Source: Bacillus subtilis subsp. subtilis str. 168
Lineage (GTDB): Bacteria > Bacillota > Bacilli > Bacillales > Bacillaceae
DNA length: 64,000 nt
Assembly: GCF_000009045.1 (NCBI RefSeq)
Contig: NC_000964.3
Span: 682,001-746,000 of the forward strand
Reading direction: 5' to 3'
The position numbers and the translations under genes were made by a program. This document shows, piece by piece, positions 3,004 to 55,602 of the stretch (positions within the stretch are counted from its first letter, which is position 1; each line of letters opens with the position of its first letter). Below the pieces are notes generated by a model that saw only the letters and a list, made by a program, of their open reading frames with translations, had not been told where the DNA came from and did no database searches.

Positions 3004-3120
3004 TTTCATCTGTCCTTATCTAAATTTTCCAAATTGGTACTATAGTTAATGACAATAAGGACGTGATGGTTACAAAAAATCTTCGTGCTGCAGCCCGCCC
3101 GAAGAAGAAAATAACAAAAT

Positions 3121-3142
3121 CCTAAACGGCAGGCCGTTTAGG
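3121..3142 (-). terminator. Hairpin downstream of gabP
   Basis: CCTAAACGGC-AG-GCCGTTTAGG perfect stem 12 bp after the gabP stop, followed by ATTTTG on the minus strand. Confidence 0.7.
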
Positions 3143-3154
3143 ATTTGATCAGCA

Positions 3155-5834: not shown

Positions 5835-5859
5835 TGGAGCTTCCTGTCACAGGAAGCTT

Positions 5860-6035
5860 CAGCGTGTCGACAAACCCTCGCATTCGTTGTCAGGTCTGCG
5901 CTTCGGTGCTCACGAATTAGAACATTCGCTCCGCTCCTATGCTCGTCCTTCCTAGACTTCAAGGGTTTTCAATCACGCTGAAAAGATGACAAAACCCTAA
6001 AATGAAAGCCATTTTAGGATTTTGTCAACAATCTG
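5860..6035 (+). repeat. Dispersed structured intergenic repeat, copy 1 (176 bp)
   Basis: Near-identical to 54146-54320 and to the reverse complement of 55371-55545. CAG...CTG ends; flanked by 23-bp direct repeats GAGCTTCCTG(T/C)CACAGGAAGCTT at 5837-5859 and 6036-6058. Confidence 0.92.
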
Positions 6036-6062
6036 GAGCTTCCTGCCACAGGAAGCTTTTTT
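6036..6062 (+). terminator. Intrinsic terminator (second copy of the duplicated mneS hairpin)
   Basis: AGCTTCCTG-CCA-CAGGAAGCT stem followed by a T-run; the first copy (5837-5859) lacks the T-run. Confidence 0.75.
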
Positions 6063-6183
6063 GTGTGTTTTGGCCAGCTTTATTGGTAACAATTTGCTAG
6101 AATCGTTTTTTTATACAGATTGCTTTTTGTGGTAAAGTTAGGTTACATTATGATGAATTTTGTAGATGACTAGGAGGAAAATA

Positions 6184-12384: not shown

Positions 12385-12443
12385 TTGTATTGTTTTTTCA
12401 AAATGAACTTGGTACAATAGACACAGAAATCAAATAAGATGAA

Positions 12444-12510
12444 TTCGTATAATCGCGGGAATATGGCTCGCAAGTCTCTACCAAGCTACCGTAAATGGCT
12501 TGACTACGTA
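12444..12510 (+). ncRNA. Purine riboswitch aptamer, guanine-sensing (pbuG leader)
   Basis: TCGTATAATCGCGGGAATATGGCTCGCAAGTCTCTACC...CCGTAAA...GACTACG matches the purine riboswitch consensus; discriminator is C (12504). Confidence 0.95.
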
Positions 12511-12579
12511 AACATTTCTTTCGTTTGATATAAATAAAACACGGTTATTTATTCAAACTGAAATCCGTCTGTAGTCAAG

Positions 12580-16365: not shown

Positions 16366-16387
16366 AAACATGAAATCAAAACACGAC

Positions 16388-16455
16388 CTCATATAATCTT
16401 GGGAATATGGCCCATAAGTTTCTACCCGGCAACCGTAAATTGCCGGACTATGCAG
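16388..16455 (+). ncRNA. Purine riboswitch aptamer, guanine-sensing (purE leader)
   Basis: CTCATATAATCTTGGGAATATGGCCCATAAGTTTCTACCCGGCAACCGTAAATTGCCGGACTATG; discriminator is C (16448). Confidence 0.97.
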
Positions 16456-16519
16456 GAAAGTGATCGATAAAACTGACATGGATATATCGCAGAAGCGAAC
16501 GACTGACGATACATGTACC

Positions 16520-54113: not shown

Positions 54114-54120
54114 AAAACAA

Positions 54121-54145
54121 AAAGCCTCAGCTCTGCTGAGGCTTT
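54121..54145 (+). terminator. Hairpin after swrC, directly abutting repeat copy 2
   Basis: AAAGCCTCAGC-TCT-GCTGAGGCTTT; the T-run is cut short by the repeat start (CAG at 54146). Confidence 0.65.
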
Positions 54146-54320
54146 CAGCTTGTTGAAAAACCCTCGCATTCGTTGTCAGGTCTGCGCGTCGGTGCTCACG
54201 AATTCTACATTCGCTCCGCTCCAATGCTCCCCCTTCCTAGACTACAAGGGTTTTCAATCAAGCTGAAAGAATGTTAAGGATGACAAAAGCTCAAAACAAG
54301 AATCAGTTTTGAGCTTTTGT
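54146..54320 (+). repeat. Dispersed structured intergenic repeat, copy 2 (may extend to CTG at 54333)
   Basis: Shares AAACCCTCGCATTCGTTGTCAGGTCTGCGC...CCTTCCTAGACT.CAAGGGTTTTCAATCA.GCTG with copy 1; second hairpin ACAAAAGCTCAAAAC / GTTTTGAGCTTTTGT. Confidence 0.9.
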
Positions 54321-54435
54321 GCGTTTTCACCTGTAAGATTATGTACATTTTGTTGCGATTTTTTTAACTCATAGTATAATTAAAGGTTGTTAGTGTAAAA
54401 ATGGATCGGATACTCTTAAGTAGGATGATGAGATA

Positions 54436-55347: not shown

Positions 55348-55370
55348 AACTTGGCTTGGTAAGCCAAGCT

Positions 55371-55545
55371 CAGAATGTTGACAAAATCCTAAAACAGTTT
55401 TCGTTTTAGGATTTTGTCATCTTTTCAGCGTGATTGAAAACCTTTGAAGTCTAGGAAGGGCGAGCATCGGAGCACAGCGAATGTTGAATTCGTGAGCACC
55501 GAAGCACAGGCCTGACAACGAATGCGAAGGTTTGCCTACACGCTG
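55371..55545 (-). repeat. Dispersed structured intergenic repeat, copy 3 (175 bp, inverted)
   Basis: Reverse complement aligns end-to-end with copy 1; flanked by imperfect direct repeats AAACTTGGCTTG...GCCAAG at 55347-55370 and 55546-55570. Confidence 0.92.
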
Positions 55546-55602
55546 AAACTTGGCTTGAATAGGCCAAGTTTTTCTTTCGCTTAAAACTAGAGGTGATTAT
55601 AG

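Follow-up and report, generated by a model that had tools for sequence, protein, structure and literature searches.

Within a short stretch of the Bacillus subtilis 168 chromosome, a gene-less repeat of about 175 bp occurs three times, and changes between the copies appear to preserve base pairing. We asked what kind of element this is and what the apparently conserved fold signifies. The window analyzed here is the whole 64,000-nucleotide stretch from position 682,001 to 746,000 of the single 4,215,606-bp chromosome. A first-pass annotation, made from the letters alone, had placed copies at 5860-6035 (plus strand), 54146-54320 (plus strand), and 55371-55545 (minus strand) of the window, and had proposed either a non-autonomous mobile element or a structured RNA acting as single-stranded nucleic acid. 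All three copies were confirmed. From the evidence set out below, the repeat is very probably a 176-bp MITE tied to an IS1182-family DDE transposase, from which it derives and by which it was presumably mobilized in trans.

Copies, extent, and distribution of the repeat

The intact element is 176 bp long, carries no gene, and runs from a CAG terminus to a CTG terminus. BLASTN searches genome-wide and across Bacillus, a check that the first-pass annotation had proposed, returned 11 loci in the whole chromosome, 2 of them degenerate. Within the genus, 42 of 48 species genomes had the repeat; of 42 genomes sampled from five further genera in the family, not one did. On a first look, candidate numbers per genome reached about 150 in some species, these being matches and not copy numbers. 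We gathered 93 full-length copies, together with their flanks, from about 30 genomes. Read as a MITE, the three sites in the window comprise the following features, listed by window position.

5837..5859, plus strand: upstream duplicate of the terminator hairpin of the preceding cation-efflux-type gene, T-tract lost; a single hairpin in relatives
5860..6035, plus strand: MITE copy 1, complete, 176 bp; ends fixed by the abutting duplicated hairpins, site empty in three relatives
5860..5874, plus strand: left terminal inverted repeat of copy 1, CAGCGTGTCGACAAA; the same motif ends IS1182-family insertion sequences
5988..6026, plus strand: subterminal 3' hairpin of copy 1, the sole covarying helix
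6021..6035, minus strand: right-hand terminal inverted repeat of copy 1, minus-strand sequence CAGATTGTTGACAAA; same motif as the insertion sequence ends
6036..6063, plus strand: downstream terminator-hairpin duplicate at site 1, T-tract kept; one loop base unlike the upstream duplicate
54119..54145, plus strand: terminator hairpin of the upstream efflux-pump gene (swrC-like), the sole remaining copy at site 2
54146..54320, plus strand: MITE copy 2, 3'-truncated; site empty in six related species, same truncated copy in three others
55348..55370, plus strand: first duplicate, in plus-strand order, of the bidirectional terminator hairpin at site 3
55371..55545, minus strand: MITE copy 3, complete, opposite in orientation to the dagK-like gene upstream; site empty in nine related species, filled in two
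55546..55570, plus strand: second terminator-hairpin duplicate at site 3; loop unlike the first and equal to another empty-site allele

Copy 2 has lost its last ~10 bp, which hold part of the right inverted repeat and the CTG terminus, and the second hairpin copy is missing with them. Its 3' junction lies inside TTTTGT, a string common to the element and the terminator T-tract. This truncation, the terminal inverted repeats, and the duplicated hairpins on both flanks had all been overlooked in the first-pass annotation. At site 3, the hairpins at 55348-55370 and 55546-55570 differ in their loops, and each equals a different loop allele found at the empty sites of other species; the divergence between them may not be simple drift following insertion.

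With respect to orientation, 10 of the 11 genomic copies are co-directional with replication, lying on the plus strand at 0.3-0.74 Mb and on the minus strand at 3.1-4.14 Mb, and the sole copy against the replication direction is window copy 3. Co-orientation with genes could account for this bias by itself.

Terminal inverted repeats and duplicated terminator hairpins

The element is bounded by 15-bp terminal inverted repeats, left and right being identical at 11 of 15 positions, and these repeats were present in copies throughout the genus. Their end motif, CAGNNTGTNGANAAA, has 4 matches in the window versus 0.03 expected. Immediately outside the ends, a locus-specific terminator hairpin, directly duplicated, flanks 91 of the 93 copies when a duplication is scored at ≥15 bp and ≥75% identity. 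Across all 93 copies, the duplication has a median length of 25 bp (range, 12-35), and it is perfect in 43. The upstream hairpin copy abuts the CAG of the element in 83 of 93 cases and the downstream copy abuts the CTG in 80 of 93, with a T-rich tract following the downstream copy in 77 of 93. Only one or two T's of the T-tract are retained by the upstream hairpin copy, and the whole tract is found at the downstream copy.

Perfect duplications reveal how the target was cut. All 34 that were examined (19-31 bp) are palindromic from first to last base, with the 5' end fully paired in 27 and the 3' end in 26, and the cuts usually take in two or three A-T pairs outside the G+C stem. Because the duplication is palindromic end to end, the cuts are symmetric about the dyad, and their spacing is set by the structure of the target and not by a fixed distance. 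In this genome, none of the five full-length copies checked had a perfect duplication.

Empty sites in related species

Each of the three window sites has an empty counterpart in close relatives (flanks 87-98% identical), with exactly one hairpin and no element. Such empty sites were found in three species for site 1, six for site 2, and nine for site 3, and the species that have copy 2 differ from those that have copy 3. With terminal inverted repeats, a target-site duplication, insertion polymorphism in the form of these empty sites, a size too small for a transposase, and a matching autonomous insertion sequence that shares its ends (described below), the repeat has what defines a MITE, and the earlier reading as a non-autonomous mobile element is borne out.

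The swrC-type terminator (window 54119-54330; orthologues L147 and L144) shows further insertions. One species carries an independent MITE there in the opposite orientation, and a further species carries an unrelated 1.2-kb insertion. This terminator appears to be an insertion hotspot.

The same data bear on the view that the repeat has no mobility of its own and reached its various terminator regions by segmental duplication or gene conversion. Such a history would suit a genome in which no transposase was found and in which the copies look old, with no perfect duplication among the five checked. However, the flanks are unrelated save for the locally duplicated hairpin, and more than 80 of 93 copies have boundaries that are precise to the single base. 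Candidate matches of up to ~150 per genome in some species, though not copy numbers, likewise weigh against it, as does the swrC terminator having been hit independently, and in the opposite orientation, in another species. Spread without mobility is already contradicted by the empty sites and the exact boundaries, and has next to no chance of being correct.

Covariation is concentrated in the 3' terminal hairpin

To assess the fold, 91 copies from about 30 genomes were aligned (alignment A2) and folded using RNAalifold, and pair counts were compared against 500 shuffles. The architecture predicted in the first-pass annotation was recovered, in which a closing stem (7 bp plus 5 bp) encloses ~100 nt and an independent hairpin of 14-16 bp comes after it. 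Paired cells amounted to 98.9%, versus 95.3% in the shuffles, and none of the 500 shuffles reached the observed whole-structure values. Eight pairs showed two-sided change, seven of which lie in the 3' terminal hairpin (helix 6), where they make up 7 of its 14 pairs. The remaining one is in the closing stem (helix 1) and occurs in window copy 2 only. Helices 2-5 had zero two-sided changes among the 91 copies.

The claim that compensatory changes indicate a conserved fold must accordingly be divided. It stands for the 3' terminal hairpin, where covariation is strong: 12 distinct versions of the core pair perfectly, and 74 of the 91 copies are without a mismatch. It does not extend to the 120-nt domain, which is conserved in sequence, without covariation. 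The three compensatory changes cited in support are all present in the copies named, and two of them proved to be one-off events. The change in CAGCgTG/CAcGCTG is found in window copy 2 and nowhere else, and three or four other copies break the stem; that in AAACCcT/AgGGTTT is compensated in window copy 3 alone, the position being an uncompensated C.A in 37 of 91 copies and C-G in 53 of 91. As described, the CGAAT/ATTCG stem is constant and its loop variable. The C(UUCG)G tetraloop does occur, in 19 of 91 copies only.

The four-base hairpin change of copy 2 was rejected as independent evidence, this copy being 3'-truncated at microhomology. Its origin is ambiguous, since the 3' arm is almost identical to the arm of the flanking terminator.

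Two further observations concern the 3' hairpin. Its mismatches (A2 columns 146-150/169-173) comprise, on the plus strand, 12 A.C or C.A versus 2 G.T, a pattern that would be wobble-compatible on the minus strand, in a small sample of copies that are not independent. Selection acting on a plus-strand RNA would favor the reverse of this A.C excess. In addition, a 13-nt run of the hairpin, ACAAAATCCTAAA, recurs together with its palindromic partner in the terminator at 3113-3147, which follows the preceding permease gene. This terminator may be a solo remnant left by an element, or may be related to the source of the hairpin.

Taken as a whole, most of the "conserved fold" can be ascribed to the palindromic architecture of transposon ends. 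The covarying hairpin is equally explained as a DNA palindrome, and its covariation could come from self-correction of the palindrome during replication instead of from selection.

Insertion sequences with the same ends and the same targets

The genus was searched for the Pfam transposase domain PF13751 in 49 genomes, and matches were found in 42. The search of this genome returned no such domain, and no IS1182-family transposase gene was detected in it. In one of the other loci, L048, a 450-aa ORF lies within a 1.55-kb unit with the termini CAGGCTGTCGAGAAA and CAGCTTGTAGAGAAA, and a 30-bp hairpin, directly duplicated, stands on either side of the unit. The ORF scored 492 bits against NCBIfam NF033551, IS1182 family transposase (cut-off, 270), and contains the Pfam domains DUF772 and DDE_Tnp_1_6; it is part of the insertion sequence and not of the MITE. 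Using the end motif that is shared with the MITE, nine more complete units were located in other species, each with its own duplicated terminator hairpin. In total, there are ten such 1.55-kb insertion sequences (from other species, and including L066), whose termini have the CAGnnTGTnGAnAAA motif as in the MITE. By its transposase and by its palindrome or hairpin targets, the L048-type insertion sequence is a member of the IS1182 family.

Both ends of these insertion sequences are hairpins, in which the terminal repeat is paired with an adjacent inverted copy and followed by an inward-pointing T-run. Positions 4-5 of the terminus vary between insertion sequence subtypes, together with their pairing partners. 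When the MITE was compared by BLAST with 30 IS1182 loci, no similarity was found past the ~15-19-bp ends, and hence the insertion sequences sampled yielded neither its direct parent nor a source for the conserved 100-nt core. Besides B. subtilis 168, six genomes of the genus have the MITE without a transposase match, and six have the transposase without the MITE; as both are nearly ubiquitous in the genus, their co-distribution is uninformative. Perfect duplications were commoner with a full insertion sequence (26 of 50) than without one (5 of 17), the difference being non-significant (p = 0.16).

One locus holds both elements together. At L066:233-1978, an inverted MITE adjoins a full IS1182-family insertion sequence within one terminator, and three hairpin copies are present, which look like two successive insertions on one target.

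The insertion sequences also bear on a different route of transposition, in which the repeat would move as single-stranded DNA or via RNA, with its hairpins read on one strand, in the manner of IS200/IS605, a REP-associated transposase, or a retroelement. IS200/IS605-type single-strand transposons are without target duplications and without terminal inverted repeats. Though both ends of the repeat and its target are hairpin-forming, as this route would expect, inverted repeats and target duplications accompany nearly every copy, unlike IS200/IS605, and these ends and duplications are shared with an insertion sequence of the DDE type. The placement of 10 of 11 copies here along the replication direction would also fit, but this bias matches gene orientation alone. 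The strand asymmetry of the hairpin mismatches (12 A.C versus 2 G.T on the plus strand) counts in favor. Next to the copies examined, neither a reverse transcriptase nor an HUH gene was found. On balance, we consider single-strand movement very improbable.

Transcription through the element and the Bacillaceae-1 motif

The same sequence was reported by Rasmussen et al. in 2009 as a 3' UTR of ~220 nt, conserved and highly structured, carried by nine genes, with the 3' end of the efeN transcript mapped 225 nt past the stop codon (PMC2784878). One of the nine genes is dagK, which carries window copy 3. That study treated the sequence as a transcript feature of membrane-associated genes, and repeats, inverted repeats, duplicated terminators, and transposons go unmentioned (PMC2784878). 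Contigs from RNA libraries span the element contiguously with the upstream gene, though contig cover alone cannot prove transcription. At 35 sites with long flanking sequence, the element sits between convergent genes in 20 cases; in 9 the sole gene to end next to it is a co-oriented one just upstream, in 5 the sole one is an opposite-strand gene just downstream, and the last site has neither. Given these mixed contexts, the element has no fixed orientation to the transcript, and no single RNA strand is conserved.

A functional structured RNA could take the form of an mRNA-stabilizing or -localizing 3' UTR module or of a small RNA, with the fold under selection in the transcript and mobility either secondary or ancient. 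The 100-nt core is strongly conserved between species and the 3' hairpin covaries, both in keeping with this possibility; yet there are zero two-sided changes in the helices of the 120-nt domain among 91 copies, and the hairpin mismatches on the plus strand are mostly A.C and not G.U. The 2009 tiling-array 3' UTR on nine genes, the efeN 3' end at 225 nt (PMC2784878), and the continuity of RNA-library contigs with the upstream gene argue for a role in transcripts, whereas the element occurs in either orientation to the transcript across the 35 sites, and sister species differ in its presence or absence at all three window sites. We judge a functional RNA to be unlikely. Nor was the proposal of a structured RNA acting as single-stranded nucleic acid supported: besides the lack of a fixed orientation, the palindromes correspond to the hairpins that form at the ends of the parent insertion sequence, a likeness pointing to a role at the DNA level, in transposition.

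We also compared the sequence with Rfam. At the gathering threshold, applied to the whole window, the window copies match no family, and a looser search of copy 1 (E up to 10) gave nothing relevant and no hit to Bacillaceae-1 (RF01690). At three other loci, long variants of the element did contain full-length Bacillaceae-1 matches (60-63 bits; threshold, 35), at the following positions.

L007:1432-1498 (~514.8 kb): Bacillaceae-1 match
L010:1432-1498 (~319.0 kb): Bacillaceae-1 match
L013:1438-1504 (~3774.3 kb): Bacillaceae-1 match

In these long variants, the module replaces the CGAAT/ATTCG hairpin region. Bacillaceae-1 is an interchangeable core insert and not the element itself, and in this genome it is transposon cargo. 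It has also been proposed as a CsrA sponge (PMC4333381). Elsewhere in the window, two purine riboswitch aptamers are found at 12425-12526 and 16369-16470 (RF00167, 86 bits each), as expected beside the purine transport and biosynthesis genes of the region.

A proposed mechanism of terminator duplication

The assignment of the repeat as a MITE is based on its inverted repeats, duplications, and empty sites, the matching insertion sequence, and the covariation of the hairpin. To these we add, by inference, mobilization in trans, a cruciform target, and a requirement in cis for the hairpin. The element and its parent would insert into palindromes that form rho-independent terminator hairpins, with both strands cut symmetrically at the feet of the palindrome. 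Most likely, the target would be presented either as an extruded cruciform or as a site recognized by a symmetric transposase dimer. Repair would then leave a full copy of the hairpin on either side of the element. At the donor, the closing stem and 3' hairpin of the MITE would be the counterparts of the end hairpins of the parent insertion sequence. Multiplication was apparently limited to copies with an intact 3' hairpin, and such a requirement would explain the compensatory changes within it. As no transposase gene was detected in this genome, the copies here would be old and immobile, riding passively in 3' UTRs. Since the upstream hairpin lacks its T-tract, transcripts would be expected to read through the element and to end at the downstream copy.

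A more far-reaching possibility is that transposition is directed by structure on both partners, with hairpin or cruciform DNA being read at the donor ends and at the target alike. Reading of structure at the donor ends would explain why the end hairpins covary, and reading of a target cruciform is suggested by cuts at the feet of any palindrome of 19-31 bp. We put this forward tentatively, with its chances somewhat short of even. If it were true, a corollary would be that the orphan Bacillaceae-1 "sRNA" is transposon cargo.

With these results, the repeat noticed in B. subtilis for decades, which is also the puzzling conserved 3' UTR of 2009, acquires a concrete identity and a mechanism open to test. 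A chromosome without a detected IS1182-family transposase gene still holds transposon fossils that reshape its terminators and lengthen its 3' UTRs, and the Rfam motif Bacillaceae-1 rides inside such a transposon-derived element. The 93 insertion sites also provide a clean data set on how an IS1182-type transposase chooses and cuts hairpin targets. For RNA-motif discovery, there is a caution in that compensatory changes in dispersed repeats can stem from the end palindromes of transposons.

Comparison with known systems

In kind, the repeat is ordinary: a MITE of a hairpin-targeting IS1182-family insertion sequence, fossilized in this genome. Its points of interest are the structure-defined, variable-length duplication of terminators, and the link to conserved 3' UTRs and to Bacillaceae-1, both of them orphan annotations. 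Our full-text searches and two reviews of bacterial MITEs yielded no earlier description of the repeat as a MITE, although a resource such as ISfinder may describe it.

Like Correia/nemis, RUP, ERIC, and bcr1 of the Bacillus cereus group, the Bacillus element is short and gene-less, has terminal inverted repeats, and is dispersed intergenically, and it shares with them co-transcription with neighboring genes and stable predicted folds. Compensatory changes have likewise been reported for bcr1 (PMC3184786). Whereas those elements have fixed duplications of 2-5 bp, the duplication made by the Bacillus element is variable and corresponds to the target palindrome (19-31 bp in the 34 perfect cases, 12-35 bp across all 93 copies), and, unlike them, the Bacillus element is almost confined to terminators.

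A closer likeness in transposase family and target is seen with IS1272 and TnSha1 of staphylococci. IS1272, an IS1182-family insertion sequence of staphylococci, chooses terminator hairpins by structure and not by sequence (PMC4923244, PMC5678879). IS1272/TnSha1 and the parent of the Bacillus element have transposases of the same family, and in both systems hairpin-forming inverted repeats, often terminators, serve as targets. In contrast to IS1272/TnSha1, the Bacillus element is a 176-bp gene-less derivative. The outcome at the target also differs, as IS1272 deletes or replaces the target stem-loop with no duplication, whereas the Bacillus element and its parent duplicate the whole stem-loop. 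Duplication of a whole stem-loop from a cruciform target has been put forward as a hypothetical alternative, "pathway b" (PMC5678879), and it is this outcome that is seen in Bacillus. Should transposition prove to be structure-directed at both donor ends and target, the repeat would be a natural, large-scale example of the whole-stem-loop duplication pathway, hitherto hypothetical for IS1272.
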